Shown here: positions 1,496-54,971 of the stretch, in pieces
How the letters are laid out: the number at the start of each line of letters is the position of its first letter
Position numbering within the stretch: position 1 is the stretch's first letter
Origin: Lepidodermella squamata
Taxonomy: Eukaryota; Animalia; Gastrotricha
Assembly (NCBI GenBank): GCA_047495785.1
Contig: JBLDXI010000042.1
Span: forward strand, 868,001 to 932,000
DNA length: 64,000 nucleotides
Direction: 5' to 3'
Translations under genes and position numbers: made by a program
The notes under the pieces: generated by a model
The model's database searches: none
Told to the model about the DNA's origin: nothing
What the model saw: the letters and a program-made list of their open reading frames with translations, nothing else

Positions 1496-4400
1496 TCAGC
1501 GCATGCCCGGAACTGCGAAAGCGGCACAATTGATCTCGGCCAATCGCAACTCGCTAAAACTGACAATTTGGTTGAAAATGTTCACGCATGACACACTCCC
1601 ATTCAGCTGCTCTAGCGAATTAGACCATGATCTTGTAAAATGACCATCAGGCTGGTAAAATCTAGATTAACAAGAAGCGGAAACTTACCGCCCTAGAATG
1701 AATTGACCACTTTGTGTGACAGGCCGCTGGCCACTACCCACGGTAGTAATCTGGCTGTCGGCACGAAAATACGTTATAGTGCTGGTCTTAGCATGTATGA
1801 TAGCTAGAAACGACCAGCCTTTTTCCACATCAGTGGCGAAACTAAACGTGGATTGACCATAAGCCCGGATTTTGAAGGTTGAATTTTGTTCTGCTGTGAC
1901 TTTGAGTCCCAGAGTTGTTCCATCAGGAGCGAATTCGATTATCGGCATGTTCGATTGGCTTGACAATGTGGTCAAAAACGCGATGGTGAAACTGGTGGTG
2001 GCTAGCTTGACTTTGTCAGCAGTCACAACTATAGGATCAATCGATGAGTAGACGAAGGCAGTGTTCGCTACGCCAAACGGCCCTTCAGTCTGCGCGAGGG
2101 GTGTAATTGGAGGCGTTGCATCGGCTCTAGGTGCCACAACGTCGTTGAAATCGGACACCAGCGGCCATATAGCTATGTTTGATGGCACAACGGTCCTCAA
2201 TGATTCGCGGTGCCAAATTTTACCGGCGTGAATTTGCGCACACTTCTTCCTAACAATCCATAATTGTGGGATTGACAGAGCTCGATCGAAAATCGATAAG
2301 CACGTTATTTGACCTTGAAGACGGTTAGTGGCGCCGAGATTCGCTCCAACATTCATGGTATCGCTCGTAATGACTGGCCGCGATGAATGCGCCGGCACTG
2401 GCCACATAAAACTAACCCTGTCGCAAACAATCGCCATTTGATTCATTGAACTGTCGTATGAGACCGCGATAAAAACCCAAGGTTGATATGCCCCTGTTAG
2501 TGACTTGCAACTGAACGTTGTCGGCGTAGCTGCACTGCCTGTCAACAATCAATTAATATGGATTCGCAGCCATAAAAACTTCGATCAACGCTGTACCCGA
2601 AACCTCATGATTGTGGAATTACAGTGGCGTAACTACATTGTGTGACAACTTGCGCGTTCTAATTTTTTTTTCTCCAAAGCTTTTGTATGGAGAAGTCATG
2701 CACATAGCAAAAAGTGGTCACACAATGTAGGTCTCCCAAACTGGGCGGGAGGAGGGGGGGGGGGCAGCCTTGGGGCCAGCACATCCTTTCTTTTCTACAT
2801 ATTTGCGTATTTTTCAGACCAAAGACTCCCCCCTGTCGTACCCAGTGTGGATTTTTCCAGCCGGGTTGGCCGGTCCCCCCTGCCCCCTAGGTCACGCCCC
2901 TGTGGAATTACAAATTACAAGTATTTGAAAAAGTTCGAAATTGGGTTGTAGCTTCTGTGTACTGTGCCTATTTAGGTAACCTTACCCTATTACATTATTT
3001 TGGACTTCCTGAAGCTATTTCTATGTGTGATCTAGACTTGAGGGGTCAGAAGCTCGCGAGATATCCATGCTTGTTTCCGCGCCGATGGATTCATTTTCAA
3101 TCCGAAGATTTCAAAAATTATAGCTATCCAGAAAAATAGTTTGACAGATATTACAGATGTCTAGAATATCTGGGAGAGTTATGCCCTTTCTATCGCTCAA
3201 GATGTGACTAGGGATGAATTAGCATGTAGGTGGCCATATGAGCCGCCGAGATTAGGAACATAATATTGATTGATCAATCTAATATCCCCCCTAAATCTAG
3301 GATCAATCTAAAATATCTGCGATTGAATATTAAATTTTCTGAGGTCTTTTAAATAATTGTTGAAAATGGGACTTTACGCCAAACTGAACCTGATCAAACA
3401 ATGGTCCGAAGAAGCAAGGCAATCGGCAGACGAACCCGACTGGCAAAAATTCGACACCATGATCGAAGAATTGCAAACCGAGTATGTCGAGCTGCTTGAA
3501 AGCAAGATGCCGCGAATTATCGACACGAGTCGGCGACTGCACAAAGTGGAACAAGAAGACGCCGGTCATTGTGTCGTCGTTCACGGAGTACCCAACACTG
3601 CCGACTACGACAGCGTGTACGCGATCATGACGGACCTATTCGATTCTTTCGACAACTTCGTGCGAATGGGCCAGTCAAAGTCGTTCAAAGTAAGATTTTG
3701 TTCACAAGCAGCAGCTAACCAAGCGATGCGAAGAACGGCAAACAGAACAGATTTCAAGGTCCAACCGTACAAACCACCACATCAAGTGGTCTATGAGACA
3801 AAGCTCCTGGAACTTCGCGAAAAACAGCCAAACAAGGAAGAACTCAAGTTGGTCGGGGCGACACTGATTTACGAGAATGGCGAAGAGTTTGCCCGGTTCG
3901 ATTCCGTCAAGGATCGAATCGTCTTGAAATCCGAGGTGGACAAAAAAGTAGATGAAAACCAGGACAAGGAGGACAAAGAAAACGAGGTCAAAACAAACAA
4001 CAAGGACAAAGAGGTCAAAACGCTAAAGAAAGACAAAACAACAGCCGGTTCAAAGTTCAACCCCAACGACGGATGTTATGGGTGTGGCGAAATCGGTCAT
4101 TTCATTCGCGAATGTCCAAACAACAACACGCAAAAAGGTGGAACTGGACCACGACAACGGAAACAATTCTTCCCACAACAACGAGTTGACCAGCAGTTCA
4201 AACAACAACAACAACGTCAACACAGCCCGCAATTTCCACCCTTTCCGCAACAAAACACGCAGTACATGTACTCGAACTACCAGCAACAGCAACAACAGCC
4301 TCCGCTCAGCATCCCACTCAACCTGTTACCGGCTCTCTTATCGGCATCACTCCAGCCGTACCTCGGTGGCTACAGCCGTTGAAAAATCGAAACGAGAAAC

Positions 4401-7400
4401 TAACAACAATCTTTCAAACAATCGTTTTTTAATTCTGAATCAGGAGGATGGCGATCAGCGAACCACGGAGTCAGCCAAGGTCGTAAGTGAAGAGCCTGCT
4501 AAGCGCGCGCGTTATAAACCTAAATTTGATCAAAACAATCGGCTTTTCAGGACAGTAGCCATGTGCTCTATCAATATGGAAACTCTCACTAACAAAATTT
4601 GGGATTTTGAAGAAGAATGTTCAGAATTCGAAATTGTAGTATTTCAAGAGCACCGAATGAAAGGCCAAGGGAAAATCAATCTCAGTAACGGTACTTTATA
4701 CTATATCGGGGTGAGCAGTGGTAGAGCTCAAGCCGGGTGTGGTATCTACATCAGACGTTGTCATCAAATAAGGGTGATCAAAATTGAATTCGTAAGTGAA
4801 AGGATTCTGGTAGCTAAACTGAAAGTGTTTGGAGAAAATTTCAACATTATCGTGGTTTATGCCCCGGCAAATAACGATCTGGCAAAGCTAGAGGATTTTA
4901 TTACTCAGGTTCAAGATATTTACTATAGGCTAAATACCGGAGGTGGAAAAACGATGTTGATGGGCGATTTAAACGGAAGAATCATGAGCCAGAAAAATTC
5001 CAATAATGTAGGAGACTGGGCTGATAAAGTGGAAAACCCGAAAGGGGATAAATGGCTAAAATTTGCAAGTAGCAACAATTTATGTTTCGCTAATACTTTC
5101 TATCCTAATTGCGGATACACGTGGCGCAGCCGTGATGGTAGAAATAAAACTTTTATTGACTACATTTTAACATCTATACCCGACAGACAACAAATCCATA
5201 AGTGCTACACTATAGAATACCCTATGCTGAAGTCTGACCATCGAATGATTGTGGCGGAATTTAAATTTTATGTCAAAAATATCAAAAAGCCTGCGGACGC
5301 AAATCCAAAGGTGAAAAATCATCTTCTACGTCAAAAACAACACATCTCGACCTTCAATGAGCACCTTGAAAAGGAAAATCTGAACCAAAATATCAGTAAG
5401 GATCAAACTTCGTCTCTTTCACAAATTTATACTAGAGCAAAAACTGCCATACTTAGGGCAGCGAAGGTTACTTGCGGTGTAAACAACTCACGTGTAATGA
5501 AGAAACCGAAACCTCCTTGGTGGTGCCCAGAAGCAAAAGAGGCTATTCAAAAGGCCAAATATGCTTATGGGCAGTACCAAGAAGGGAAGATGAGCTCTGA
5601 GGAAAACAGAAAAGTTCTCCATTGGAAAAACAAAATTCTCGAAAAAGTAAAAAAAGATTTCGAATCCAAGCAATTCAAAGACCTGGATGACCTCCTCAAA
5701 GATGGCCAAGATTGGGAAAATCTTAAGCGGTTTTGGACTAAAATAAAAAACCTCCGAAATCCTAATTCACGAAACAAAAATATAGATAAAATTGAAACTA
5801 TAAACGGAGAAATTGCTACGGAACTCGATCAAATTTTAGAAGCATTAAAAGATTATTTTATGGAATTGCTAGATGGTCAGGAAATTGATGAACTTATCGC
5901 TATTTGTGACAAACACTTGCACCCACCAACAGAAGAACCAGATATGGAAGGAAATAGTTTACCTGTCCCGAATGAAGGTATAAGCTTGGCAGAGTTAAAA
6001 AACGCTATCAAGCATATGAAAAATGGCAAAGCCGCTGGTATTGACGACATAACCCCCGAAATGATCAAGGCCCTTGATGATACAAATATTAATTGGCTCC
6101 ATGATTTATTAAATAAAGCCTGGGTGGATAAGTTAATCCCAGAGGAATGGTCAACTGCCATCATAGTCCCTCTTTATAAAAACAAAGGTGAAAAATCTCA
6201 ATGCAAAAATTATAGAGGTATCTCGCTTTTAAGTATTGTTGGAAAATTATACGCCATCGTGCTAGAAAGAAAACTTAGGAATGTCATAGGGTCAAAAATT
6301 TCCAACAGACAATTCGGATTTCAACCAAGAAAAGGTACCCGAGACTGTATTTATATATTACGCCAAATTATAGAGAAAATTATTCTTCACAACAAACAAC
6401 TTCACTTAGTATTCATCGATCTAGAGAAAGCGTACGACCTTATTGATAGAGACAAAGTTTGGACAACCCTCAAAGACATGGGTGTGAAACCTGATCTGTT
6501 GGAAGCAGTAAAAAGTTTTTATAGCTCAAATAAGGTAGCGGTTAGAGTAGGCGACAAACTCTCAAAATTTTTCCAAACACAAAAAGGTCTGAGACAAGGT
6601 TGCCCGATGTCACCTCTCCTTTTTATAGCCGTGTTTAACAAAGTATGTGAAAAATTATACAACAGCGAAGGAGGATTTCCCCTCGATGAAAAGAAATTAT
6701 TGAATCTTTTGGCTTTTGCCGACGACGGCACGCTTATAGGTATGACTGACGAGGAGATTCGAACTCTCCTTGACATTTTCAATAAGGCATGTATAGAACT
6801 CGGACTTAAAATTAATGTTGCGAAAACCCAATACATGGTTGTAGGAGGCAAAGGAGATGAAGAACTATTTTTAGGTGATCAGAAACTCGAAAAAGTCGAC
6901 TCTTTTAAATATTTAGGAAGCATAATTACTAATGACGGAAAAATGGATAAAGAACTGAACGCTCGAATCGCCAAGGCAGGGAGCTGCTTTGGGGCAATGA
7001 ACAAATTTATGTGCAACAGAGGCCATATAAGTATAGAAACAAAAATGAAGGTTCTAAATTGTGTGATTATTCCTACCATCATGTATGCGTGTGAAACATG
7101 GAATCTAACAGTCGCACAAGAAAATAGCCTGAATGTAATTGAGATGCGATGGCTTCGAACAATTTTGGGCATAAAATTATTGGACTTCATACCTAACTAC
7201 GACCTCAGATTGGTTTGCGGTGGAGTCATAGAGGTCGGAAGGTTGATAGAAAAACAAAGAATGAGATACTTAGGCCACATTATTCGAGAAGATGAATATA
7301 ACGCTAGCAGCTTGACAAACGCAATGCTAAATTGGAATAACCCCGAAAAATGGAAAAAACCCAAAGGCGCACCTAAAACTACCTGGCGTCACGCAATGAA

Positions 7401-10400
7401 TAGAAGCCTCAAAAAAATAGGATTGGTCAAATTACAATACAAAAATATTTATGAAGGACCCCCGAAAGTTGGGAGACCGGCGAAAACAGCGGTCGTGATA
7501 AGGGTTGAAACTAAGGAAGTAGCTGATTGGGAACTGACGCAAATAGCAGCGCGAGATCGCGACGAATGGCGAATGCTAACTTTAACAATAGCGAATTTCG
7601 AATTTCATGCGAAAAGCAGGCTCTTCATGAATGTGACCGATGGCGGCACCCCGTGATCGCTGATCGTCACCCTCCCCTAAACCTTTGCGGTAAAACGGTT
7701 CCTCTTGTTGTGCGAATATTACCATCACAAGCCAACAATGAACCAGCGGAGGAGGAAAAATAAAACTTTTCATTGTTTCATTGTTTTCATTGTTTCATTG
7801 TTTCAATCTAATATTGATTTTTGGATTCTCCGTACTCGATTTAGTATTAGAAAGATCTTCTTGAGAGAACATAACTGCCCAAAGTCATTTGAGGAGCTTC
7901 CATGGCAAGTTAGGACCTAGTTCACCTAGTTCACCCTGTCCTTAGACGAGGGAAGAAGATCTTTTGAGACCAACAGGGTGAGGCTGTTCTCTCGAAAACT
8001 GCTTTATTAAATCGAGTGCGGAGAATCCAAAAATCAATATTAGAAGCTTCCAGCTATTACAGTTAGAGATCGAGAGAGTTCACCAAGATGACCCTAGATC
8101 TCCCCTAAGGGGGTACTAAGGCGTCGGAGGGGCTAAAAAATAAATCTTTCTGACCTCTTGTTTTTTTAACGGTTTCTAGGTAATTTGACCACGCTGAGTT
8201 CAGCGCAATTCACAGAAATGATCCATCCCTCATAGTTTTTGCGCTGCGACGTAGGGACGTAGCCTAGGACGACGCCGCGACTGCGCGCGCGCTCGTTGCC
8301 AAACGAAGAAACAAAATCCCGTTGCTAATGTAAACACAATATTTCTAAAATTCTAAAATCTTTATTATTTTACTTTTTAAATTTGTTTTCAAATGAAAAT
8401 TTAATTTGCAGTGGAAAACATGAACGCGAAATTTGAATTTCTCGTCGTTCACTTTTTTAGGGGGGGGGGCTGCAAAAAAGCTAAAATTCTGTGTGATTTT
8501 CTGAATGTAGGCTCATCATAATTTTAAGAGCCCGGCTTATGAATTTTGAAAAATTTTCGAAAAACTATTTTTTCGACCAAATTGAGGTCTGAGCTAAATT
8601 ACGGAGACCCCCCCCCCCCGTCATGAATTATGCTCCTCAATTTTTGGCGCGAAAAGCTAGAATGGCTGACCATCATGTCAGCCCATTGGTTGAAAATCAG
8701 AGGCTAAGCCTGAGCGCCTACTGGAAGGACTGTTTAGTGTGTTTACCCTGCCTTGAATCCCGCTGCTCTGTGGGTGACCAGTGAAAAATTAGTGATATTT
8801 TTCAAATCTAATAGTGATTTCTTTCGAGGACAAGAACAAATACTACCTGTGTAAATTTGTAAGGCGTTCGACGTAGGATTGTAATAGATTCGGAATAGCG
8901 CTGTGCTTTCGTAGAACTCAATCACTGGTACATCGGATAGAGGGAAATCCGCAAAGCCGACATAGGCAGAGATCGTGAATGAACGGTCGAGGACGATTTT
9001 GCTATCTGACACTTTAAAATAGCCGGCTGAATCGCCCACAGAAAGCGCTGTGTTACGATAGCCGAACGGCCCATAGTCGAACGACATGGAGGAGCTGCCA
9101 ACAATCGAAGCCCCAATATTATTTCCACTAATATCGCTGGCGCCGTAATTCGGCGTGAGAGCGAAGAAAGCCAGGTCCTGTGGCAACCCGAAAGGACGCT
9201 CTAGAAGGAAGTGGAAGAATTTTATTCTCGAAAAGGCACGGTGATGAAACAAACGCACCCTCGTTGCACAGTTCCAAAGAAGCGTAGATGGTATCGCTAT
9301 CTTGCACCTGAGTCATACTATGTTGAATGAGCTCTTAACAACAATTCATGCTCACAAAGTTTTGAGGACAATTGTTCGCCACGGAAACGCACGTAGCCGC
9401 CATCAGAAGTTCATTTGTGCACAGCTTGTACTGAAATATAAATATGAATGAATCAGCTTATCATTTCAAAATTCAAAATTACTTACGGACGACATGCAGG
9501 CGTTGTAATTCCAGGTGAAGGTCCCGTTTCCAAATACAGTTGTCTAAACACAAATAGTTAACAAAAGAAATAAACAGACACTCCTAAGGTGATCACACCG
9601 TGGGCGCTCCTCCCGGGCAAGATGGCGAATCCTGACAGAGTCCAGCGGTAGCGCACAGATAGGCATTCTGAAATTCGATTGAAAAAACTCGTTCGGAATT
9701 TAGTTACCACAGCTCGGTATTACCGCGTTATTGCATGCACTTTCGGACGTGTAAGTAACATTTCCAATCTATCAAAAATGTCGAATTTGGGGAGTTTGCT
9801 ATCACAGGTACTCAAGTTGACTCACACTTATCAGCGGGTTGGGACAAGACTGGCCAGGGAAGCATCCATTGAAGGACTTGTCGCCATTGTAGCAGTGGAA
9901 GTACAACGCATCTGATTTTGAGAAATTTATAAAGAAAAATTCGATATTTTTGTTGAAGATGGGCCTTACTTTTGCAAAAGACGAAAGAATCAAAGTTGAA
10001 GCCAGAAGCACTCGCAATCTATGCAAAACCGAATTCATGACTTGGAAGCTATAGAGTAACACTTACAGTTGGAGTTGGACAATCGGAGCTAATCGGGATG
10101 CAAACTGCCAGCAACTTTGTGTTCGAATCAATGCAGCTCTTATGCTTCCCCTGAGAAAGAATCAAGTGAAAGAATTGCGATAGAAATAAAAGGCAGAGTC
10201 ACCTGAATTGCAGATACACAAGCTTGGAAGTTGGTCGCAAAAGGTCCAGAGTCTGAGCCAACTCTTCCGAACTGTAATATAATATGATGGTTGTAGCAAA
10301 TTATCAACAATGTAGTTATTACGTCGTATTTGCCAGTGCCGCTTGGGCATGATTCAACGCAACTACCTCCGGTTGTAGCATCGTAACACATGCTGATAGA

Positions 10401-12695
10401 CTACTCACGAACAAGAATTCGATATTAAAATAATTTGTAAGAATATGAAAAGCTGAACCCCAGTTTCGCAAGCTGCTTTGGTCGAGAAGACGGTTTGACT
10501 CGGTGTCTAAATAATAATATTTGATTGAATAATACGAGAAAACTGAGATGCTTACATCAGCTCCATCGCAGGCGAGCTGAACAGGCTTGCAGCCAGAAAA
10601 GCTTGTCCCTCCCGAACCGAAACAGCGATGATGTGGGAAGAAAGATTGCGGAGCTGGAAAAACAGAATTCTCTTAATTCGAATATCACTCATCAAGACAA
10701 ACCTGATTCGCATTCGCCAAGGTTCGAAAATGAAACGCCAGTCGAAAATTGGTCGGTACTACCAGCCGGGCAATTAACGCTACCATCTGTAGGTATGCAT
10801 TTGACAAAAGCATAGGTTTGCGAGTTCAAGCAGAATTTATGCGGTTTCTAAAAATAGCAACAAGTGAGAAAAGGCATCAAGCTCTGAAAAGTTACCATGT
10901 AAGATGCGAGATAGCTTAGACATTGAGCGTAATTTGAGCCAAAATTGCTGCCACCATTAAAAGTTGCAACCTTAGAAAAGGCATCAGAGTTGTGATTCAG
11001 AAGAAAATCGCAATCGGAATCCTACCAGGCTCATGGGCGATCTGCATATTGAACGGCACACTAATGATGATGAGGATTTGCAAAGAGCAGCAGGCTGAAT
11101 TAAATGGAGCAACAAGAGCAACAAATTCAATTGAAATTAATGAAATTGATCAACTCACCCCAACAGAGCAGTGTTTCTTGTTGATATAAATTCCACCGCT
11201 GAAAGCCTGAAAGCGAGAAAGCTCTTATTCCGTTTCAAAACAATTTTACATAAGTTTACACCAATAAGCAGGTTAGAAGATGGGAATTTTACCGAAAGGG
11301 GGATATAGGTAAGGGGCCTCCCTTACATCGCCCAAGTTTCCGCAGGGGCAAGGCAAGAAAGCATAAGGGTCCCCCCTGTGGTTAGGCTACGAGCCCCGAG
11401 GGCTCGAAGTAGGGACAGTCCAGCGGAATAGTTTTCAGTTTTTATAAACAAAACAATGGGTTCCGACAAGGTAGCCAATTTTTTCCGCTTGTAAATAGTT
11501 GAGCTATGGGTGAAAATATGCAAGGGACCTACAATCGAACTACTGAGAAAATTTGAAAATTAACCTAACCCTAACCTAACTCTAACTAACCTGATCCTGA
11601 ACTCTGAACGCTAACCCAACCTAACCTGAACCCAGAACCCTAACCATACCTATAACCCTAACCCTAACTCCTTATCATCGTGTTGCCGAAAAACTTGAGT
11701 TTATGATACAAATTGTTAAAGGTTAAATGGAAGAAAGAAAAATTAGTTAAAATTTCAAAATACAATTGGAATAATTTGATATCGGGGCTAACCTGTGTTT
11801 GATTGCGAGTATCGCAGCCCGGATTCGCCAGAAGGCAGCCGGAGAATGACCGATCCGATGTGGAAAAGCATCGAACGTGAGGCGAAAAATCAGAACTCCT
11901 TGCGGCTAAAATGAAGATTAATTCAATTGGCATCAAAAATAATCATTAAAATTGAACCATTTATTTGCTTCAGGCACTCGTTCAAACTGAATATCTGCGT
12001 CAATTCACGCTGAGAAAAATATAATTGGAAATTAGGACAATTAGACTTTTAATCAAAATCTCACCCATTTTTGTGGGCAGTTGCTCTCGAAAGGGACGCA
12101 GGTCTGAGTTGAACCATTCGAGCACATTCGAGCCGGATTTTCCTGTTAAAAAAATTTAATGTCATGAAATTAATTGCCGCAAAAAAACCATGTAAGGCCG
12201 AATTGTGTCGATGCAGGCGTCATAGCGAGTCTTGAATGTCAAACCCGTAAAATTGACATGCTGTTGAAAAATAAATATAATAATATAAAAAAATATTTGA
12301 ACAAAATAGAAAATACCGGAATCTCATCCTTGGAACACGCCAAAATTTGAGGCAGGCATCTCACAGTGAATAGGTTCGCGTTGTAACAGCTGTGGGCCGA
12401 CTGTAATTCAAGTTTTGAGAAAATAGAAAAAATAGTTGGAAAATCAATTATCGATTTTACCCCTTGTTTGCAACTCGCGTAATCAAGCAGTGTAGGGCCG
12501 ATCTTCGAATAAATTTAAACAAATGACAGAGAGAGTTGTGCCAACCTAGTTCCAACCTACCTGGACTTCTTCAAATAGGTTACAATCGAGTCGGCAATCC
12601 TTGAATTCGTCGTCCCATCGCGAGATACATCGCTTATAACAGTCACCACCGCAAATCGCCAGCGTGACAAGCAAAATAGCTTCAAAAAAATTCAT
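1496..12695 (-). CDS. Copy A: secreted protein with signal peptide, 12 four-Cys modules and two LamG/pentraxin-like (ConA-like) domains; 26 exons, about 1019 aa
   Basis: Hand-spliced GT-AG exons: 12695-12561, 12502-12461, 12400-12317, 12260-12189, 12142-12065, 12009-11958, 11905-11793, 11206-11159, 11094-11026, 10970-10896, 10847-10703, 10653-10556, 10506-10459, 10400-10323, 10271-10203, 10150-10067, 10018-9970, 9911-9826, 9768-9724, 9667-9599, 9543-9487, 9430-9356, 9307-9259, 9200-8847, 2538-1689, 1631-1496. Total 3060 nt, in frame. N-terminus MNFFEAILLVTLAICGG. LamG-type motifs FTISAYV, PWVFIAVSYD, GQITCLSIFDRALS. Exons are collinear with copies B and C. Confidence 0.85.
2622..2902. mobile_element. 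Non-autonomous hAT-type MITE (281 bp)
   Basis: Imperfect TIRs CAGTGGCGTAACTA ... TAGGTCACGCCCCTG and a perfect 8-bp TSD TGGAATTA at 2614-2621 and 2903-2910. Confidence 0.85.
3366..4382 (+). CDS. LINE ORF1: coiled-coil-like N-terminus, RRM-like region, one CCHC zinc knuckle, Q-rich tail
   Basis: CYGCGEIGHFIREC knuckle; RRM-like segment CVVVHGVP...FKVRFCSQAAANQAM; first ATG at 3366. Confidence 0.85.
   Translation: MGLYAKLNLIKQWSEEARQSADEPDWQKFDTMIEELQTEYVELLESKMPRIIDTSRRLHKVEQEDAGHCVVVHGVPNTADYDSVYAIMTDLFDSFDNFVRMGQSKSFKVRFCSQAAANQAMRRTANRTDFKVQPYKPPHQVVYETKLLELREKQPNKEELKLVGATLIYENGEEFARFDSVKDRIVLKSEVDKKVDENQDKEDKENEVKTNNKDKEVKTLKKDKTTAGSKFNPNDGCYGCGEIGHFIRECPNNNTQKGGTGPRQRKQFFPQQRVDQQFKQQQQRQHSPQFPPFPQQNTQYMYSNYQQQQQQPPLSIPLNLLPALLSASLQPYLGGYSR
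4078..7656 (+). CDS. LINE ORF2: APE endonuclease plus reverse transcriptase
   Basis: APE motifs FQE, MGDLN, IDYIL, SDH. RT motifs QFGF, FIDLEKAYD, GLRQGCPMSPLLF, FADD, FKYLGS. RTE-like C-terminus YACETW, RYLGHI, ARDRDEWR. True start codon uncertain. Confidence 0.95.
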   Translation: MGVAKSVISFANVQTTTRKKVELDHDNGNNSSHNNELTSSSNNNNNVNTARNFHPFRNKTRSTCTRTTSNSNNSLRSASHSTCYRLSYRHHSSRTSVATAVEKSKRETNNNLSNNRFLILNQEDGDQRTTESAKVVSEEPAKRARYKPKFDQNNRLFRTVAMCSINMETLTNKIWDFEEECSEFEIVVFQEHRMKGQGKINLSNGTLYYIGVSSGRAQAGCGIYIRRCHQIRVIKIEFVSERILVAKLKVFGENFNIIVVYAPANNDLAKLEDFITQVQDIYYRLNTGGGKTMLMGDLNGRIMSQKNSNNVGDWADKVENPKGDKWLKFASSNNLCFANTFYPNCGYTWRSRDGRNKTFIDYILTSIPDRQQIHKCYTIEYPMLKSDHRMIVAEFKFYVKNIKKPADANPKVKNHLLRQKQHISTFNEHLEKENLNQNISKDQTSSLSQIYTRAKTAILRAAKVTCGVNNSRVMKKPKPPWWCPEAKEAIQKAKYAYGQYQEGKMSSEENRKVLHWKNKILEKVKKDFESKQFKDLDDLLKDGQDWENLKRFWTKIKNLRNPNSRNKNIDKIETINGEIATELDQILEALKDYFMELLDGQEIDELIAICDKHLHPPTEEPDMEGNSLPVPNEGISLAELKNAIKHMKNGKAAGIDDITPEMIKALDDTNINWLHDLLNKAWVDKLIPEEWSTAIIVPLYKNKGEKSQCKNYRGISLLSIVGKLYAIVLERKLRNVIGSKISNRQFGFQPRKGTRDCIYILRQIIEKIILHNKQLHLVFIDLEKAYDLIDRDKVWTTLKDMGVKPDLLEAVKSFYSSNKVAVRVGDKLSKFFQTQKGLRQGCPMSPLLFIAVFNKVCEKLYNSEGGFPLDEKKLLNLLAFADDGTLIGMTDEEIRTLLDIFNKACIELGLKINVAKTQYMVVGGKGDEELFLGDQKLEKVDSFKYLGSIITNDGKMDKELNARIAKAGSCFGAMNKFMCNRGHISIETKMKVLNCVIIPTIMYACETWNLTVAQENSLNVIEMRWLRTILGIKLLDFIPNYDLRLVCGGVIEVGRLIEKQRMRYLGHIIREDEYNASSLTNAMLNWNNPEKWKKPKGAPKTTWRHAMNRSLKKIGLVKLQYKNIYEGPPKVGRPAKTAVVIRVETKEVADWELTQIAARDRDEWRMLTLTIANFEFHAKSRLFMNVTDGGTP
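7807..8044. mobile_element. Inverted-repeat (MITE-like) element at the LINE insertion site
   Basis: Arms of about 37 bp (7807-7843 and 8008-8044, TCTAATATTGATTTTTGGATTCTCCG(T/C)ACTCGATTTA) with one mismatch. Confidence 0.75.
8160..8290. repeat. Dispersed MITE-like repeat; second copy at about 15400-15545
   Basis: Shared ggtttctaggtaatt.ga.ca.gctgagttcagcgca...catagtt.ttgcgct. The second copy contains the hairpin tgcgctagagcatagagga...tcctctatgctctagcgca. Confidence 0.65.
11561..11671. repeat. Degenerate TAACC/TAACCC simple repeat in intron 7 of copy A
   Basis: taacctaaccctaacctaac...taaccctaaccctaactcc. Confidence 0.85.
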
Positions 12696-24490: not shown

Positions 24491-24494
<4 letters not shown>

Positions 24495-24538: not shown

Positions 24539-24540
<2 letters not shown>

Positions 24541-38543: not shown

Positions 38544-38796
38544 TATAGTTGAATCGTGATTTTTTTCATTCAAAGAAATGTTGGAAAAATCAACGTGGAA
38601 TTTTTTTGCGTAAATCGTCGCGTGCTCAATAATTTATTCTCGTTCACGCGAACAAACAAAAATTTTCGAAAAATAATCTGAGGAAAATCTGAAATTTAAC
38701 ATTTTTACGAGAATAAGGATTCCTATCATTTAGGTATAGCTTCAATTAATTAATCACTGAAAATTATTTAAAAAAATCGATTATTGCTTTGGTTTA

Positions 38797-41035: not shown

Positions 41036-43010
41036 ATGTTTGTTGAAATTTTCGCAATTTTAATTATTGCGCTAATAATATGTTTCGCATTATATCGAAA
41101 ATTAATTGCGCATCGATGGCTGGCAAATGCCGGCATCCCAGGCCCACAGCCGCACTGGCTCTACGGCAATTTACGCGAGTTATGGTCGACCGATAAACGG
41201 CATGAGATTTTTAGAAAATGGGCTGAAGAATACGGACCCGTTTTTGGCTATTACGAAGGCGGCAATCCTGTTGTTGTGTTCAACCGACTTGAAGATATCG
41301 AAGATATTTCAATTGCTAAATATGACACTTTTCAAGGCCATTACGTATCTGTTCTACAGGTAAATCCAAAATCAAATTTTTCAGATTGAAATTATCACAA
41401 GATTTTTTTTAATTTTTAAATTTCAAAAAATTTCAAAATTCTCAAATTTGAAGTGAATTTTACTAATTGCTGTTTTCTTAAAATTTTTGCGATTTATTTT
41501 TAGAATTTCATGAGTGAATTGAAAATTCAAGTTTTAAAATAATTTTTTTTTGAAATTTTCAGCCAGACCAACAGACCGATATGGAAAGCAGTATATTTCG
41601 GCCGAATCTGTTCTTAGGAACGGGCAATTTTCGGCGGCTTCACCGGCGATGCGTGACCGAGCTATTCACCGTACCTCGCTTCAAATTGATTTTGCCGCTT
41701 TTCGACTCGGCTTTGCAACAATTGGTCGCAGTTCTGCGCTCAAAGGCTCAATCTGGAACCGAATTCGATATTCTCGACGTTTTCGAACGATTTTCTATGG
41801 TAAGAAAATTTAATTAAATATAAAATCATTTATTTGTGAAAAATTTGAAAAAAAAACTAAAAATTCTATTTTTTAATTTTTTGTTTCATTTTAAATGTAA
41901 AAATGTAAAAACAAAATTCAAATTTTAGAAAATATTAGAGAATTCGCATGATATTATTTAGAAATTTTAGAAAAATTTAAAAAAATATGTTTCTAAGTAT
42001 TTTTCTAATTTTCCAAGGATGTAATGGGAACGGCAACAGCTAGCATCGAAATAGGCTGCCTGGCTAAAATTAACGAGGACAGCAAACTCATCGATAATGT
42101 GCGATCAGTCATGCGTGAAAATGTCGAAATCAGCCGTGTCGAGAAATTTTTCATGATTTTCTACGACATTCTTTATTGGCTAATTCCTTACTTCAAACGC
42201 TTCATCGAATTTCTTAACCGTGATTTTCACATCGTGAGCCGTCACAAAATTTGGGACATTTGCTACAACGTCGTAAATCGAAGGCTGGACCAAGGCTTGG
42301 AGGAAAGATCCGACTGGCTGAATTGGCTACTGCAAGATTCGATCACGGAAAAAGAATTAACTAGAGAAGAAATTGCTGGAATTTGCATGCTATTTTTCGT
42401 CGCTGGATCCTCAACAACATCGGCTGGAATAACGTTCATAACGCATCTTCTAGCTCGAAATCCTCGAATTCAGGCCAAAATTTACGAGGAAATTTCGAAA
42501 ATTCCGAAAGGTGATTTTGTGGATAGGGTGACACAAAATACGTACCTGGAGTGGGTTTGCGAGGAAGCGATGCGAATTCACGCCGTCACGCATGGTTCAC
42601 TGAACCGTATCGTTTTATCGCAAAATCTCGAGGTGAATGGCGTGAAAATTCCGAAAAATTGCCGTCACGTTTTCATGGATACTTGGCGCATTCATTTCGA
42701 TTCGAAAATCTGGGGCCCAGTCGACCCGATTCAATTCTACCCGGAACGGTTTAGCCCGGAATATTTGGCGGCTAACCCGCGGCCTTCGACGGTGTTTCTC
42801 GCCTTTGGCATCGGGCCAGGAATGTGTATCGGCAAGAAATTTGGCATTTTTGAGATGAAACTAGCGATTGCAAGTGTTGTGAAGAATTTTGTTATTGTAA
42901 CCGGGAGTAATGAGGACATTTCTGTTAGATCTGTGCCGGTTTATCAGCCTTCTGATGGCTTGCTAGTGAAACTGATTCCACGGGGAATGACGGCTACTTT
43001 TAATGTTTAA
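41036..43010 (+). CDS. Microsomal cytochrome P450 (CYP3-clan-like), 517 aa
   Basis: Exons 41036-41359, 41563-41799, 42018-43010. N-terminal anchor, PGPQPHWLYGN, I-helix AGSSTT, EAMR, PERF, heme loop FGIGPGMCIG. Confidence 0.95.
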
Positions 43011-44094: not shown

Positions 44095-46503
44095 TCAGGC
44101 AGCACTCTTCGGCCATTTCCCCATCCAAACTGGGAAATAAATAACGGCAAACGCCGTAATCGAATAGACAATTACACACGCCTCAAGCGCGACCAACTGG
44201 TCCATCCACGACGACATGATGACAATAATTAGCACGCCAGCGCACAGTATGGTGACGCATAGAATCGACACAATGCGATAGCACGCAACATCGATTTGGT
44301 ACTCGACCGATTTCGGCAGGGCCTTGACCTGGTACGCGTAGAAGGCGCTCAAAATCATGAAAATAACATTCAACCCGGTAAAGGCGCCGGCAACAGGTGA
44401 TAAAATCGACGAATAACACCGATGCGACACCAAAATGTAGTACTCATCCAGGTCGAAATCGAACATAACCCCACTCCTCTCGGTTATAATTTGAATTGGC
44501 TCGTAAAAATGGAGAAAAATCAGAACGGCAACGCAGATTATGAAGGTAACCCCGGTTAGGATGACCGTGTATTTCCCAACATCTTTCGATGCCAGGGATT
44601 TAGCTAAGGACCTCCTCCTAGGCTGCGGAGCTGGGTCACTGCTTGTCGAAGCTCTCGAACCTCCCTGGACCGTCATGCTAGTTTGGAGCGCGGCTTTTGC
44701 AGCTGCAGCTTGCTTTTTGTCCGTAGGCACCACTGTGGTATGGGCCAGGCCGTAGTAGATGTGGCCAGGCAGCGTGAAAGACCTAGCGCAAATCGCAGCG
44801 TTGATGATTGAGAACCCTAGAACTGGCATAATGGCTAGCCACGGGCAAACCATGTCGTTATCTGCGAAAGCTTCGATTACAACCCCTGAATCTAGGATCA
44901 AACAACCGATTGCGATTAGGCTAGATCCGATAAGGTCGAAGTAAGGATTCGGCCCGATTTTCATTGTTAGAAGGCTGAAACCGACCTTGGCGAGACAAAT
45001 CAGTTTCCCAAGCATCAGGAGCAACGAAACTGCTGAAATCACTGATTTGTTGCTTAGGGGCAAATCGGCGCTGTACAACGCAATATTCGATAGATCTTTA
45101 GGCGGTAGGCCGGATTTCGTAAAGAAAACCGGTGGCTTCGGGTTCTTCTTATAAGGGCCAATTGCGAAGTTTTCAATGTTCAAATCAGCTGTTGTAGCGT
45201 TCAGTTTATAGATGTTGTAGATATGCTGAAAATCTCCGTTTAAGAACTGAGAGACAGACTGATTCTCGGAATCGACCTCTAGGCGTTGAGATAGGAACAA
45301 CCGGCCCGATCTAACGCTGATAAAATCCAACTCCGAAGCAGCTTTGTACAACAACGGCTCAGCAATAGCCGTGCGATCAGCGTAGTCTCTCAGCGTCATG
45401 TTGTAGCTAGCTTGGAGGTATCGCTCAGTTCTGTTCAGGGTTAGGAGAGCTGCTGTTACAATGTCCTGACATGCGTATCGGTTGAAAAATCCGCCAAGGG
45501 TCATGTAACGAGGCCCGAGGGCTGCGATTAATCGCCTATCGACATCCTGAGCTGTGTAGCCTAAACTACCCGGCCCGTCGTAGTCGCCGAATAGCCGTGT
45601 CAATCCGATCCAGAAGGTTATTTTCAACTGCTCGTAAACCATCTGTGGCGGGGAGCATTCTCTCGGGAATGGCAGAATTCTGGGATCTATCGGGAAGTAG
45701 CAGCTAACGCTGAATAGGAACAGGTAACTCGGCGCAGACATTCCGGCGAGATAGGCCTGGCATAGAACTCGCATGCAGAAACCATAGGGAGACGAAGCGA
45801 AGGCTACAACAAATACTCTAGCGTCACTTGCCTTCATATCGTACGCGAAATCAGGCTTCGTGAAATCGACGTCTGTTATCAGAATCGGCACCTGAATTCC
45901 GTTGCTTGTGAAGCTCGATGCTAGCTGTTTCGCGAGGGTGTAGTCCACAGCGGCTGTTGAAGTTATTATGCCAACCTGCTGCCATTTCCCGATGCTTTTG
46001 ATGAAGCGTAAATACGCGAAAATCGTGTTCTCAACGGGTAGCTGCGGCCGTTGTAGTGCGATATGCCGTTCGCGAGGCACTGTTAGCGTTATCGAGGAAC
46101 AGCCCAAGGTGTAAACGATCGATTTGTATGCCTTGACAACAGGCGTGTAAAACTGGCAATTTGTGGGCGAGCCCAGCAGTACAGGCGCTAGGATGGTGTT
46201 ATTTTGCGGCACGGACTGAAAATTTTCGACAAAGCTGACGAAATTTTTCGGTATCACATCACCAGTAGCGGCTTCGTCCAACTCGACGATTTCGATCTCG
46301 TAGCTGGGCAGTAGGTTGCCGCGTTTATTTACATCCTCGATGGTCAAATTGTAAACGGCCGAGCAAATTGGGCTCAGATTTAGCGGCGCGCTTTTGCCGA
46401 TGAAGGCGATAAACAGCAACTTTGTCCTCGGTGATTGCGTAGCGTTCTGCGCGAATCCAAGGCTTACATAGCTCAGTAGCAAAAAACCGCGGAAGTTGAA
46501 CAT
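44095..46503 (-). CDS. Intronless divergent class C GPCR (GABA-B-like: Venus-flytrap domain plus 7TM), 802 aa
   Basis: Signal peptide; LTIEDVNKRGNLLPSYEIE, WQQVGII, DARVFVV, VLCQAYLAGM, PPKD; seven hydrophobic segments; no Cys-rich linker. Confidence 0.85.
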   Translation of the reverse strand: MFNFRGFLLLSYVSLGFAQNATQSPRTKLLFIAFIGKSAPLNLSPICSAVYNLTIEDVNKRGNLLPSYEIEIVELDEAATGDVIPKNFVSFVENFQSVPQNNTILAPVLLGSPTNCQFYTPVVKAYKSIVYTLGCSSITLTVPRERHIALQRPQLPVENTIFAYLRFIKSIGKWQQVGIITSTAAVDYTLAKQLASSFTSNGIQVPILITDVDFTKPDFAYDMKASDARVFVVAFASSPYGFCMRVLCQAYLAGMSAPSYLFLFSVSCYFPIDPRILPFPRECSPPQMVYEQLKITFWIGLTRLFGDYDGPGSLGYTAQDVDRRLIAALGPRYMTLGGFFNRYACQDIVTAALLTLNRTERYLQASYNMTLRDYADRTAIAEPLLYKAASELDFISVRSGRLFLSQRLEVDSENQSVSQFLNGDFQHIYNIYKLNATTADLNIENFAIGPYKKNPKPPVFFTKSGLPPKDLSNIALYSADLPLSNKSVISAVSLLLMLGKLICLAKVGFSLLTMKIGPNPYFDLIGSSLIAIGCLILDSGVVIEAFADNDMVCPWLAIMPVLGFSIINAAICARSFTLPGHIYYGLAHTTVVPTDKKQAAAAKAALQTSMTVQGGSRASTSSDPAPQPRRRSLAKSLASKDVGKYTVILTGVTFIICVAVLIFLHFYEPIQIITERSGVMFDFDLDEYYILVSHRCYSSILSPVAGAFTGLNVIFMILSAFYAYQVKALPKSVEYQIDVACYRIVSILCVTILCAGVLIIVIMSSWMDQLVALEACVIVYSITAFAVIYFPVWMGKWPKSAA

Positions 46504-48965: not shown

Positions 48966-49994
48966 TTATTTAGCCATTTTGCGCAGCAGGAGAAACAAAT
49001 TCCCACCAGCACTTGCATAAGCTTTCGGATCTTGCTTAACCAGCTCGACACAACGGGACGTCAATTCGCTGAGAATCTTAGCCTTATCCAAATCCGGGCG
49101 TAGAGATGCGATAAATGTCGGCTCAAGAATCGCCAAAAGTTGATGAATAAATTGTCTCGCAAATCGGTCAGCGTCCTTGTGAACACAATACTCCTCGTAC
49201 ATCCTGGTAGGAGATCCCGCTACTTCCTGGATAGCAACAACCTGCAAGCTGGTTTCAGCCAAAACCTGCTGCTCGGTCAGTTCGGCAATAGTCCTGACGT
49301 ACATGGGGAAATTCACGTTCAGCAAGTCGTCGTCAGTCAGTTCGGCGCCTTTCATCGAATAAAGAGCCTTCTCGAAGACCTGGGCGATTCGCTCAGGCTG
49401 GTGGATGCAGTGAACAAACAAAATTCCGCCATCGACGAGTTCGCGCGATCTCGACGTGAGAAAGTTACGCCAATCTTCACGCGCAGTTGTAGAGAACGCT
49501 TCCTTCTCCTCCAGGCTACTAAATTCGTCGAAGAAGCATTGATTTTTCAGTTTTATCGGAATTTTCGACAGCCAGTGCACCGCATGCGTTGAAATTCCGA
49601 TGTGAAGCGTGTTGCTAGGTAGAATTTGCTTGGTGAAGCTATTTCCGCTGGCCAACGCGAAGACGTTATCATGCTGTTTCAAGTACGACGCAGCGTTGTT
49701 AATCAGATACTCAAAAGCTGTCGTCCAAGCATTCGATGGCAGGTCGTTGTGGACAACCGTGATAGGAATCTGCCCGAATCTCTGCCGTAGTTCGCGTATG
49801 ATCAGCGAAACGTATCGCCCGCTTTGCGCAGCCGTGCTGCAGCCGAAATCTGCGAGCAGCGCGGATTCAAGGCTAGTCTTATCGAGTTCTTGCGCAGCTT
49901 TTCGGATGATGGCTTCAGCTTGGCTGTACAACGACCGCTGAACATCGGAGCTTGCGTTGTAGTCAGCCCGCATAGCAGCTCGGCTCGCTTCCAT
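48966..49994 (-). CDS. Intronless SABATH-family (Methyltransf_7) SAM-dependent small-molecule methyltransferase, 342 aa
   Basis: ADFGCS, HNDLPSNAW, GNSF..QILP, STHAVHWLS, DWRNFLTSRSREL..GG, FPMYVRT. Confidence 0.92.
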   Translation of the reverse strand: MEASRAAMRADYNASSDVQRSLYSQAEAIIRKAAQELDKTSLESALLADFGCSTAAQSGRYVSLIIRELRQRFGQIPITVVHNDLPSNAWTTAFEYLINNAASYLKQHDNVFALASGNSFTKQILPSNTLHIGISTHAVHWLSKIPIKLKNQCFFDEFSSLEEKEAFSTTAREDWRNFLTSRSRELVDGGILFVHCIHQPERIAQVFEKALYSMKGAELTDDDLLNVNFPMYVRTIAELTEQQVLAETSLQVVAIQEVAGSPTRMYEEYCVHKDADRFARQFIHQLLAILEPTFIASLRPDLDKAKILSELTSRCVELVKQDPKAYASAGGNLFLLLRKMAK

Positions 49995-52850: not shown

Positions 52851-53056
52851 ACCCTTGAAGTTGGTTGCGATTTTCAACACCACCACAAAATTAGTGTAGT
52901 ATAAGTTAGTTGCTTTCAAAATATGCTTGTTATTACTTGGAATCCTGTTTATTACTTCGTGAATTTAATTTTCCCTGATGATGCGCTAGTTTTTCTGGCA
53001 CACGCTTCGAATATCAAAAGTCAGAACGAAAGAAGAAGCTTTTAACCTGATTTTAA

Positions 53057-54971
53057 TTAAATCAAATTCGTCCATCGATCACGAAGCGTGTCATACATAG
53101 GATCGACCGGGAAGTCATCAAAAGCACATTCATCTCGTTTTTCATACAGCGACATGAACCGCCGACCCGGTACGAGGCTCATGCGAGCTGGCGAGATGCC
53201 AAAACCACTGAAGCTGAACACCAGCCGATGCATTTTCGTTAGAAACAACCAATCAACGTAGGTTTTCGCCGCCTTATGCCAGTTTCCATCAGGATTTTCA
53301 CCTGAAATCATTAAAATCTTGTCGATATGACTCGGCTCCATATCCACCCTGAGTAGCTTCACAACTTTCAAATTGCTTTTCGAGAATAAGGCGGTGAAAT
53401 TCGATTGAAATGCAGACCAAGCATTGTTATCGTCCGTGGTAACGAAGACAGTGTAATTTGTTGTTTGATTGACAGCATCCGAGTCGATTAGCCGCTTAGT
53501 TTCGTCGACAAAGCACTTGACGTAGTTGGGCTTGAACACATTGAAGCCGTCAACAGCTACGAATTAGAGAAAAACATGAGAAAACACAGTAAAGAGCCCA
53601 AAACTCGAGGTTTCAAAGGTATTTGGGTCAGATTCCAACATTATGACCTAGAGATTACCAAGGTAAATAGCTTGGTGCTGAGGTAAACATCGGTTGCTAT
53701 GGAAGCTGTGTGTTGCTACGCAAAAGTCTATATTGAAGCCGTGAAAAGCTCCAGAGTTACCGAGCAAAAAAAGAAAGCTAGGATCTGGGATCCAACGACT
53801 ACAAATACCAGCTATTTGGAAACTTTGTCTAATAGGTCAACCTTTCCTAAATGATCCTGTTTGACAGGTCAAAGCTGTTAGAGATTGGTTTCCAAGGTAC
53901 CGTTGCTAAGGTAAACAACTTACTATAAACACGAATTTGAACACCAATTTTGCGCGAATCAGCCCAGAATTCATGCCCAACTGATCCTAATATAACATTG
54001 TCGAACAGCCGTTGAAGCTTTTGTTTAGGCCGCGAAAACAAGACCCGCAACGCCGCAGCTATTGTCGCACGATGGTCAATATTGCCATATTTGAAAATAC
54101 TCGGCATAACCATCATCAACCGATCCATGAAATATTTGTTATGAAACAACGCATCCAGGCCGATGTAACGATTCAGCATGACATTCAAGTTGGGCACATC
54201 GTGGAGAGCTGGATAGAAGTCTGGCTCTTCGATTGTTTCGATTAAAGGTTCAGACGGGACTTCATCGCTGTGTAGCAGCCATTCTGAGGATTGTTCCGCT
54301 TGACTGACTTTCGTCGCGAAATCAAACCCTGGGTAGAGATTCTCATTCACGTTGAAGAATTTCGAAATATCACCAGGTCCAGGCCAATCGAAGCGGAAAA
54401 TTCGGTTGGTGGCTACGGCCAGGTAAAACCCGAAAACAGTACCACGAAGCCAGTCGCCCAAGCCGTAACAGCTGACCGATTTGATTTTGCAATCTTTTGG
54501 AGGGTTTTTCCGGTAGACAAAGAACAACTCGTCGTAACAGGTAAGATTTTTCGGAAAGTTGCAGGTCGATGTGACGAAACGAGGTCGAAATCGGGTTAGC
54601 TTGGCATAGGAAGCGAATTTTCGAAAGTAATTTTCTTGGAGTTCAGAGACGATTTCCTCGACGCGCCGATTCAATTCTGGATCTATGGCGTGTTCTTCGT
54701 AATTTTCGAACTGGGGCCTTTCATCGAAGCTCGTTATATCCTCTTCGTCAGAAATATTAAAACTCTGAAAAATGATCTGAAAATTTCTCGTAAAATGAAA
54801 AATAATCTGAAATACTACCATGGATTGAGAAGCATTTCCTGCTTGCGAATTGAAATACTTGAGGTCTTCGGGAGCTTTCCATTTCCACAGTGTTAAAATA
54901 AGAAAGACACATACGAGGGATAGGGCTAACTTGGCGGCATTAACCCAGCATTTAGGTCTAAACCTAGTCAT
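53057..54971 (-). CDS. Type II membrane fucosyltransferase of the alpha-1,2/alpha-1,6/O-FucT superfamily (GT11/GT23/GT37-like)
   Basis: Exons 54971-54819, 54764-53924, 53874-53842, 53556-53057. Motifs GLGDWLRG, IGVQIR (I), VFVTTDD (II), DWLFL...SGFG (III). N-terminal TM. Confidence 0.82.

Follow-up and report, generated by a model that had tools for sequence, protein, structure and literature searches.

The stretch of DNA analysed here, hereafter the window, is 64 kb long, and its minus strand carries three secreted LamG genes, a GT6 gene, an extra GT6 exon and a fucosyltransferase-like gene, all of them present as claimed by the first-pass annotation made from the letters alone. The features of the window are as follows.

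1499..12695, minus strand: LamG-1 (Pfam Laminin_G_3 E 6e-8, paralogue alignments, signal peptide)
3357..7656, plus strand: LINE retrotransposon in a LamG-1 intron (Pfam zf-CCHC, Exo_endo_phos, RVT_1)
17395..23103, minus strand: LamG-2 (Pfam Laminin_G_3 E 1e-7, paralogue alignments, signal peptide)
25046..25550, minus strand: copy of the GT6 terminal exon, B' (Pfam GT6 E 1e-33, 94% DNA identity to exon B)
26099..36172, minus strand: LamG-3 (Pfam Laminin_G_3 E 1.5e-7, atlas features, splice sites and phases, signal peptide)
37215..38543, minus strand: intact GT6 (ABO-family) glycosyltransferase gene (Pfam GT6 E 5e-35, PDB ABO E 2e-24, splice sites)
41015..43010, plus strand: cytochrome P450 gene with several exons (Pfam p450 E 2e-48, 4e-10 and 4.5e-4 on three ORFs)
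44095..46503, minus strand: class-C GPCR, a single 802-codon ORF (Pfam ANF_receptor E 5e-12)
48966..49994, minus strand: SABATH-type SAM-dependent carboxyl methyltransferase, a single 342-codon ORF (Pfam Methyltransf_7 E 4e-35)
53057..54971, minus strand: fucosyltransferase-like type-II membrane protein gene (splice sites, alignment with relatives, fold model of the relative P0003)

Between GT6 and the fucosyltransferase-like gene, over ~15 kb, lie three unrelated genes on which the first-pass annotation was silent, namely those for the P450, the class-C GPCR, whose 7tm_3 match (E 7e-6) is under the Pfam gathering score, and the SABATH methyltransferase, for which an exact look-up of the protein found no identical record. 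GT6 and LamG-3, on the other hand, share a strand, and only ~1 kb separates the 3' end of GT6 from LamG-3 downstream of it, a spacing closer than random scatter.

The GT6 gene is composed of exon A (38058-38543), which encodes a type-II membrane anchor and the N-terminal half, and exon B (37260-37721), which contains DSD, HEESHLN and the stop codon. The intron between them (37722-38057) has GT..AG splice sites in phase 0, and AATAAA is found near 37229, with the transcript end near 37215. Against the family profile (CAZy family 6; Pfam PF03414), for which the cut-off is 25 bits, exon B scored 121 bits and copy B' 117 bits, and exon A alone fell narrowly under the cut-off with 24.4 bits. Comparison with solved members gave an E of 2e-24 (89 bits) for human ABO and of ~1e-21 for bovine alpha3GalT. 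DSD was aligned to D211-V-D213 of ABO and HEESHLN to HDESHLN, so that the counterpart of Glu303 is kept. Judged from its sequence, the product is predicted to be a Golgi-type, metal-dependent retaining alpha-1,3-glycosyltransferase.

Of the ABO residues H233, T245, W300, E303 and D326, which we take to be the contacts to the fucosylated (H) acceptor, the counterparts in GT6 are N, T, H, E and K by a gap-free alignment (4y62 numbering); the ABO-type acceptor set is thus not present as such, with three of the five contacts (H233, W300 and D326) being different. These changes lower the case for an ABO-like acceptor, and a fucosylated acceptor may still be used. With respect to the donor, ABO positions 266 and 268 are occupied by Asp and Ala in GT6. 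GalNAc transfer by GT6 enzymes requires Gly at 266 or 268 (PMC4692239) and, because Gly is found at neither position, the donor is more likely to be UDP-Gal than UDP-GalNAc.

In contigs of the runs X2 and X3, which are transcript-like by appearance, the run type (RNA or DNA) being a guess, the coverage of GT6 was confined to its exons, with 37717 joined to 38057 in one X2 contig; GT6 appears to be transcribed and spliced. A comparison with organism B revealed 15 synonymous and 7 non-synonymous differences, and the gene is, as far as these counts indicate, under purifying selection. GT6 genes were not found in invertebrates according to a paper of 2014 (PMC3961637), and the GT6 described here is an invertebrate one that bears an intron, seems to be spliced in transcript-like contigs and would be under selection.

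The extra exon, B' (25046-25513), has an intact frame of 148-155 codons with a DAD motif, a TGA stop and AATAAA ~25 bases downstream, and it retains a 3' splice site in phase 0, consisting of a polypyrimidine tract with AG. Its similarity to the exon B region (37259-37758) comprises the exon and 37 intron bases and ends at the stop codon. The divergence between the two corresponds to a dS of 0.124 and a dN of 0.033 (dN/dS 0.27), with a sole indel that is in frame, and no second exon A for B' was found in the window by tblastn. Some contigs of X2 and X3 contain B'-like letters, but B' expression was rejected as the explanation, since the 6-base insertion of B' is missing from them; given that exon A is also represented by a divergent contig, another allele or a paralogue would account for them. 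Copy B' is located 0.6 kb downstream of LamG-3, between LamG-3 and LamG-2, and to this extent the interleaving of GT6 with the LamG genes, as had been proposed, stands, but it rests on a 506-base copy of one exon. Over these 506 bases, the DNA identity to exon B is 94%, compared with 42-52% identity among the LamG paralogues, and the ages of copying are therefore very different. The LamG genes would have arisen by an old tandem duplication, and the copy of ~500 bases from the last exon of GT6 would be much younger.

The three LamG genes share a plan of a signal peptide, a stalk of cysteine modules, a double LamG head and a short last exon with the stop codon. In LamG-1, the ATG is at ~12695, the mini-exons for the stalk are at ~9.3-12.7 kb, and the first-LamG exon (8746-9312) is followed by the large exon (1688-2548) and the last exon (1499-1666). 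The corresponding parts of LamG-2 are at ~23103, ~20.0-22.9 kb, 19359-19901, 17581-18528 and 17395-17577, and those of LamG-3 at ~36172, ~32.6-35 kb, 31349-31768, 26290-27133 (or up to 27162) and ~26099-26233. The first exons encode the hydrophobic signal peptides MNFFEAILLVTLAICGG in LamG-1, MNFLLTLFLATLAFSSVG in LamG-2 and MRSFILIILVILFGFIGQASG in LamG-3, and the upstream (first-LamG) exons are homologous across all three genes. The matches to Pfam PF13385 Laminin_G_3, a concanavalin-A-like jelly roll, were of 33.4, 32.3 and 32.2 bits for the three genes (cut-off 27.6). For LamG-3, the atlas features reached 0.98 to Laminin_G_3 clusters, in which 48 of its 60 matches fall. The first LamG of each head had no Pfam match and was assigned from the sequence pattern only. 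Neither Pfam nor the atlas features gave a pentraxin or lectin-specific family for the LamG domains, the matches being to generic Laminin_G_3, and such a match is not diagnostic of sugar binding. The stalk consists of small four-cysteine modules of an unrecognised type. Most likely, the three paralogues are secreted extracellular binding proteins, as is suggested by their predicted architecture. They resemble the collectins and ficolins, which are stalked secreted lectins, in being secreted and in having a repetitive stalk that ends in globular binding-type domains, and differ from them in that the stalk is made of four-cysteine modules, not collagen, and the heads are two Laminin_G_3 domains. 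The X2 and X3 contigs over LamG-3 exons were rejected as evidence of LamG-3 expression, as they are only 86-90% alike and hence derived from paralogues. A chimeric transcript of LamG-3 and GT6 was also rejected because the donor of the LamG-3 large exon is in phase 2 and the acceptor of B' in phase 0.

The fucosyltransferase-like gene encodes a type-II membrane protein of ~515 residues in two exons. Exon 1 (53924-54971) contains the anchor, GLGDWLRG and ...IGVQIRVY, and is separated by an intron (53557-53923) from exon 2 (53057-53556), which contains FVTTDD and SFSGFG and aligns to the C-terminal half of the relatives, the window protein being alignable along the whole family. The exons had no match in Pfam, even at E 10, and no sequence match in PDB. 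Among 1.84 billion proteins, 15 relatives were found, from animal-like and protist-like sources. The relative L001 has a two-exon structure that matches that of the window gene, and the sole close relative is on a 1.9-kb contig. The relatives matched Pfam XG_FTase at the CGGFGDRxRG motif with 12.5-17 bits, which is under the cut-off of 23.4, and none of the named families (Glyco_transf_11, FUT8_N_cat, O-FucT and XG_FTase) was reached by the window gene, which is a member of an almost unpopulated family. Word-index protein searches with exon 1 of this gene, with GT6 exon A and with a LamG large exon were all blank, a result that is weakly informative given the length window of the tool.

A fold model was obtained for the relative P0003, not for the window protein itself, from alignment A4 (pLDDT 78.7, pTM 0.82). 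Its best structural match in PDB was AtFUT1, the GT37 xyloglucan alpha-1,2-fucosyltransferase (5KOE, 5KOP), with a Z of 21.4 (293 residues aligned, rmsd 3.8; Foldseek E 5e-11), followed by FUT8 (17.5), NodZ (16.5), POFUT2 (14.6) and POFUT1 (14.4), and then by GT9 (10.2). A GT-B variant fold is common to the model and the solved fucosyltransferases. The family differs from AtFUT1, however, in that the sequence identity is 15-18%, there is no match at the Pfam threshold and 15 members are detectable. IGVQIR, with the motif I arginine for GDP-fucose binding, is kept in 13 of 14 alignment rows, the window copy included; the likeness of FVTTDD and SFSGFG to motifs II and III was judged by eye alone. 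In the window copy, the family-invariant R of 'GDR' is replaced by W, and SFSGF is found where the family has SRSGF. The wider clan also includes enzymes for other sugars, such as the plant GT106 rhamnosyltransferases, which carry the O-FucT Pfam domain. The model points to a putative Golgi-type GT-B enzyme that would represent an orphan family, structurally nearest GT37, in the alpha-1,2/alpha-1,6/O-fucosyltransferase superfamily. This superfamily comprises GT11, GT23, GT37, GT65 and GT68 (Martinez-Duncker 2003, as cited in PMC8439653). The gene identities of the first-pass annotation are accordingly borne out at the family or superfamily level, through Pfam GT6, Laminin_G_3 and the superfamily fold of a relative, but there is no named family for the fucosyltransferase-like gene.

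In five of the relatives, the protein is extended at the N-terminus by ~320 residues; this extension contains an 'FFGGS'-type motif, and its language-model features are GT-A-like. It was considered as a GT6-like domain, which is not claimed here: hhalign against exon B placed 'FFGGS..FC' on the 'FYGGR' site of GT6 with a non-significant E of 0.15, and against exon A the E was 0.82, there was no Pfam match, and the AlphaFold model was poor (pLDDT 35), so that the GT-A features alone are in favour. A GT-A-like extension in these relatives is a lead only. In the contigs of the protist-like relatives L002-L004, no GT6 neighbour was found, and there was one weak GT32-like neighbour (E 0.002).

What suggests a joint role of GT6, the fucosyltransferase-like enzyme and the LamG proteins as 'writer and reader' of a sugar is solely the closeness of the genes. 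We lean slightly toward the view that the window is rich in gene families and that three of these, each expanded in the lineage, would have members side by side here rather than form one demonstrated functional unit, because the P450, GPCR and SABATH methyltransferase genes are interposed, with the P450 on the other strand, because the LamG domains match generic Laminin_G_3 only, because the LamG genes and the GT6 exon were copied at times far apart, and because the contigs of the protist-like relatives show no GT6 neighbour. The position of LamG-3, with GT6 ~1 kb upstream and B' 0.6 kb downstream, is nevertheless tighter than would be expected from random scatter. The LamG genes may be linked to the two enzyme genes by chance, and a function of the LamG proteins as readers of the product is unsupported, whereas the two enzymes may well belong to one pathway. 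It is conceivable, though rather unlikely, that the two form a pair of writers, in which the fucosyltransferase-like enzyme and then GT6 would act on one glycan to give a Fuc/Gal-capped, blood-group-like epitope, with the LamG genes as bystanders and the 15-kb linkage as what is left of an association of both families across the genome. The nearest solved fold of the P0003 model, AtFUT1, would fit such a pair, as AtFUT1 is an alpha-1,2-fucosyltransferase that acts on galactose, and so would the transcription and purifying selection of GT6 and the GT-A-like extension that hhalign places on the 'FYGGR' site in the five relatives. That placement is non-significant and does not extend to exon A, however, and the low pLDDT of the extension and its lack of a Pfam GT6 match, the changed ABO contacts, the W for R and SFSGF for SRSGF in the window copy and the three intervening genes all count against the pair. 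A full system, in which the double-LamG proteins bind the glycan for self, symbiont or surface recognition, is improbable: it draws on adjacency, a common strand and the flanking of GT6 sequences by LamG genes on both sides, but these are outweighed by the Laminin_G_3 matches that are not diagnostic of sugar binding, the old LamG duplications as opposed to the young GT6 exon copy (dS 0.12), the three genes between the enzymes, the single-exon nature of the interleaving and the N, H and K at H233, W300 and D326.

With regard to B', GT6 might have two alternative last exons, such that the phase-0 donor of exon A at 38058 would be spliced either to B (37721) or to B' (25513, phase 0), a possibility that we regard as doubtful and that is independent of the other readings. 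The splice to B' would span 12.5 kb containing LamG-3, and it would yield two enzyme forms that differ in the half with DxD and the acceptor loop. The signals that such an exon needs (open frame, polypyrimidine tract with AG, stop and nearby AATAAA) are all kept in B', the similarity to B covers no more than the exon with its 37 intron bases and ends with the stop codon, the dN/dS of 0.27 goes with an in-frame indel, and several of the differences fall in the loop aligned to ABO 233-245. The counts are small, however, with ~23 changes between B and B', of which those polarised to the B' branch are ~3 synonymous and 3 non-synonymous, and a young dead fragment may stay open by chance. That the GT6 unit reaches over LamG-3 via B', with the nested LamG protein binding the glycans of two GT6 forms with different acceptor loops, is highly improbable; if true, it would be a physically coupled glycan writer and reader module in an animal.

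In the human ABO/H pathway, FUT1/FUT2 (GT11) are followed by ABO (GT6), and the fucosyltransferase and ABO loci are on different chromosomes. The window resembles this system in having a GT6 with DxD and the Glu303 counterpart, at 89 bits to ABO, and a fucosyltransferase-like gene of the same superfamily nearby, and differs in that this gene is not GT11 (no Pfam match, nearest fold GT37) and in that GT6 has N, H and K for H233, W300 and D326, with Asp at 266 and Ala at 268. In the O-antigen cluster of E. coli O86, the GT6 WbnI and the alpha-1,2-fucosyltransferase WbnK are linked and make a blood-group-B-like epitope; this bacterial operon has no lectin linked to it, and its fucosyltransferase is of GT11. 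It is a precedent for GT6 and fucosyltransferase genes linked in one locus, but the genes here are eukaryotic, have introns and are 15 kb apart with unrelated genes between them. If GT6 and the fucosyltransferase-like enzyme do build a blood-group-like epitope, such glycans would have arisen independently outside vertebrates, and recognition of the epitope by the secreted LamG proteins next door, if it occurs, would amount to a rare linked writer and reader pair in an animal.

As a separate observation, the LINE inside the LamG-1 intron, which is absent from the first-pass annotation, is intact, with two ORFs: ORF1 has a zinc knuckle, and ORF2 an endonuclease and a reverse transcriptase (RVT_1 E 5e-37).

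The window has a G+C content of ~41% without strand skew and is eukaryotic and invertebrate-like. A Pfam scan of its open frames, combined with a self-comparison of the window at the DNA and protein levels, gave the following features.

1.5-12.7 kb, minus strand: LamG-1
3357-7656, plus strand: intact LINE, in a LamG-1 intron
17.4-23.1 kb, minus strand: LamG-2
25046-25513, minus strand: isolated copy of the last GT6 exon (B')
26.1-36.2 kb, minus strand: LamG-3
37215-38543, minus strand: complete GT6 gene
38844-40124, minus strand: two open frames upstream of GT6, no family match
41.0-43.0 kb, plus strand: multi-exon cytochrome P450
44095-46503, minus strand: class-C GPCR, single exon
48966-49994, minus strand: SABATH methyltransferase, single exon
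53057-54971, minus strand: fucosyltransferase-like gene, two exons

The first-pass annotation had proposed a blood-group-like locus, in which a fucosyltransferase and a GT6 would act as glycan writers and LamG proteins as readers. The fucosyltransferase, the GT6, the second GT6 exon and the three LamG genes that it listed were all found, and the open-frame map placed every one of them on the minus strand as claimed, but the P450, GPCR and SABATH genes between GT6 and the fucosyltransferase-like gene had been omitted.

The GT6 gene, a member of the ABO family, consists of exon A, which codes for a membrane anchor with a short tail and for the N-terminal half of the catalytic domain, and ends in GAG followed by GTAAGA (38058), and exon B, which starts after TTATTTTAG (37721), the junction being in phase 0. 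Its identity as a GT6 was borne out by exon B, which scored 121 bits against Pfam GT6 and was aligned without gaps to human ABO (E 2e-24), with the DxD motif of ABO facing DSD and the counterpart of Glu303 kept in HEESHLN. Among the acceptor contacts of ABO, which we take to be H233, T245, W300, E303 and D326, T245 and E303 are retained, whereas H233, W300 and D326 are replaced by N, H and K. The contact residues lend no support to an H acceptor of the ABO type, and would still be compatible with a fucosylated one. Positions 266 and 268 (ABO numbering) are Asp and Ala, and because GalNAc transfer by GT6 requires Gly at one of them (PMC4692239), the donor is likelier to be UDP-Gal than UDP-GalNAc. 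According to a paper of 2014, GT6 had not been found in invertebrates (PMC3961637).

Contigs assembled from two public runs, X2, which carries the same organism label, and X3, which comes from a second organism (organism B) and is RNA by guess only, were placed on the stretch 33000-38700. Over the GT6 gene they cover only the two exons; one X2 contig crosses the intron, joining 37717 to 38057, and X3 contigs end at 37215, about ten bases (9-14) past an AATAAA. The listed differences between the window GT6 and X3 comprise 15 synonymous and 7 non-synonymous ones. Because of the exon-only contigs, the intron-crossing join and the 15 versus 7 differences, the GT6 gene appears to be transcribed and spliced, and it is constrained. 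X2 also contained two GT6 transcript versions over 37228-38565, one identical to the window and the other 4-5% different in both exons, with letters in common with organism B and with B', which points to a divergent allele or to another GT6 paralogue. Between GT6 and LamG-3, the segment 36629-37010 was matched by up to 100 different contigs from the genome's own DNA run and is a high-copy repeat; similar pile-ups were observed at 33573-33763 and 35483-35864. The minus-strand frames upstream of GT6 (38844-40124) are AT-rich, have 236 and 148 codons, and gave no family match.

The presence of a second GT6 exon was confirmed at 25046-25513 by an intact frame and by similarity to exon B, which starts 37 bases inside the intron and stops exactly at the stop codon. 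In B', the 3' splice site and the stop are retained and the frame, which includes a DAD motif, is open; an AATAAA follows ~25 bases downstream. Comparison with exon B yielded a dS of 0.124 and a dN of 0.033, resulting in a ratio of 0.27; the intron portion differs at 4 of 37 bases, and the sole indel, of six bases, is in frame. B' could be an alternative last exon of the GT6 gene, spliced across 12.5 kb containing LamG-3, and the exon A donor, being in phase 0, is compatible with it; we consider this doubtful, and B' would otherwise be a young dead fragment. A tblastn search found no second exon A within the window. A chimera of LamG-3 and GT6 was rejected as out of frame because the donor of the LamG-3 large exon is in phase 2. 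A stretch of ~110-150 bases of the frames upstream of GT6 recurs on the minus strand at 23542-23759 (71-87% in protein translations); this copy, at 23.5-23.76 kb, sits between B' and LamG-2, and the order here, B' followed by this stretch, is opposite to that at the full GT6 gene.

In the fucosyltransferase-like gene, exon 1 opens with a type-II anchor, and its last residues, ...IGVQIRVY, precede a GTAAGT donor; exon 2, preceded by a TAG acceptor, contains FVTTDD and SFSGFG. Neither exon matched Pfam or a PDB sequence, and a word search gave no match; an exhaustive search of 1.84 billion representatives returned only 15 relatives, with no named protein among them. Because the closest relative, a 1.9-kb Logan contig, has both exons (40% and 33% identity) and the intron at the same place, the gene model is confirmed. 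The other relatives are on compact, protist-like metagenome contigs, and exon 2 was aligned to the C-terminal half of the family. An AlphaFold model was obtained for one relative, P0003, rather than for the window protein, with the family alignment as input (pLDDT 78.7). Its best match was Arabidopsis FUT1 (Foldseek E 5e-11; Z 21.4 over 293 residues), followed by FUT8 (Z 17.5), NodZ (16.5), POFUT2 (14.6) and POFUT1 (14.4), with a clear fall thereafter to heptosyltransferases (Z ~10). Since the modeled fold matches these enzymes with a drop behind them, it assigns the family to the alpha-1,2/alpha-1,6/O-fucosyltransferase superfamily in its published definition (PMC8439653), with GT37 nearest, and the earlier fucosyltransferase assignment is thus supported at the superfamily level. 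The window copy has W in place of the R of 'GDR', which is R in 13 of 13 relatives, and SFSGF where most relatives, the closest included, have SRSGF. On the protist-like metagenome contig L004, the gene directly after the relative P0020 (11282-12301, plus strand) has a weak match, under the cut-off, to the DXD glycosyltransferase family Gly_transf_sug (E 0.002).

In five relatives, 645-802 residues long, the N-terminus is extended by ~320 residues. A conserved 'F(F)GGS..FC' motif in this extension was aligned by hhalign exactly with the GT6 'FYGGR' site, at a non-significant E of 0.15. The extension gave nothing against GT6 exon A in hhalign and no match in Pfam, and its structure model failed (pLDDT 35); its Atlas features pointed toward GT-A families (0.88 for GT6). 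A GT6-like extension is a lead only, and for the GT6 and fucosyltransferase-like genes of the window to be a writer pair is plausible, though less likely than not.

The large exons of the three paralogous LamG genes (1688-2548, 17581-18528 and 26290-27162) share 42-52% identity over ~287 residues. The C-terminal half of each matched Laminin_G_3 above the Pfam gathering score, in agreement with the Atlas features (0.98), and the domain is completed by a short, stop-terminated last exon. Because an upstream exon common to all three genes (8746-9312, 19359-19901 and 31349-31768) has the pattern of a LamG domain start, with residues 1-95 of the large exon supplying the rest of that domain, the head is predicted to be a double LamG, its first domain from the pattern only. 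Small cysteine-rich exons lie still further upstream. A hydrophobic signal peptide opens the first exon in 3/3 genes, and no C-terminal membrane anchor was found in them; these findings, together with the Laminin_G_3 matches, bear out the description as three secreted LamG-fold genes. The LINE (3357-7656, plus strand) consists of a zinc-knuckle ORF1 and an endonuclease/reverse transcriptase ORF2 (1192 codons), both open, and looks recently active. A LamG-3 intron contains a 252-base inverted repeat with 99% identical arms (28302-28553 and 28842-29092) separated by 290 bases, probably a small DNA transposon.

The LamG genes are tied to the enzyme genes by position only, and a Laminin_G_3 match is no predictor of sugar binding. 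The LamG genes diverged long ago and the GT6 exon was copied recently, so that, judging from their divergence, the two were not duplicated together. Taken together, we lean toward a reading in which independently expanded families would be co-located, with the enzyme pair possibly related in function and a reader role of the LamG genes unsupported.

As for the remaining genes, the intronless SABATH-type carboxyl methyltransferase (48966-49994, minus strand; Pfam Methyltransf_7, E 4e-35) lies in an animal-like genome, and such enzymes are known mostly from plants; this exact protein had no record in the public collection. The GPCR (44095-46503, minus strand) is a single frame of 802 codons with an ANF-receptor ligand-binding domain and a 7tm_3 match under the gathering score. 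A reverse-transcriptase fragment was found at 60175-60585 on the minus strand (RVT_1, E 1e-7), and further short open frames at 55-64 kb, similar to each other, are probably decayed retroelements.
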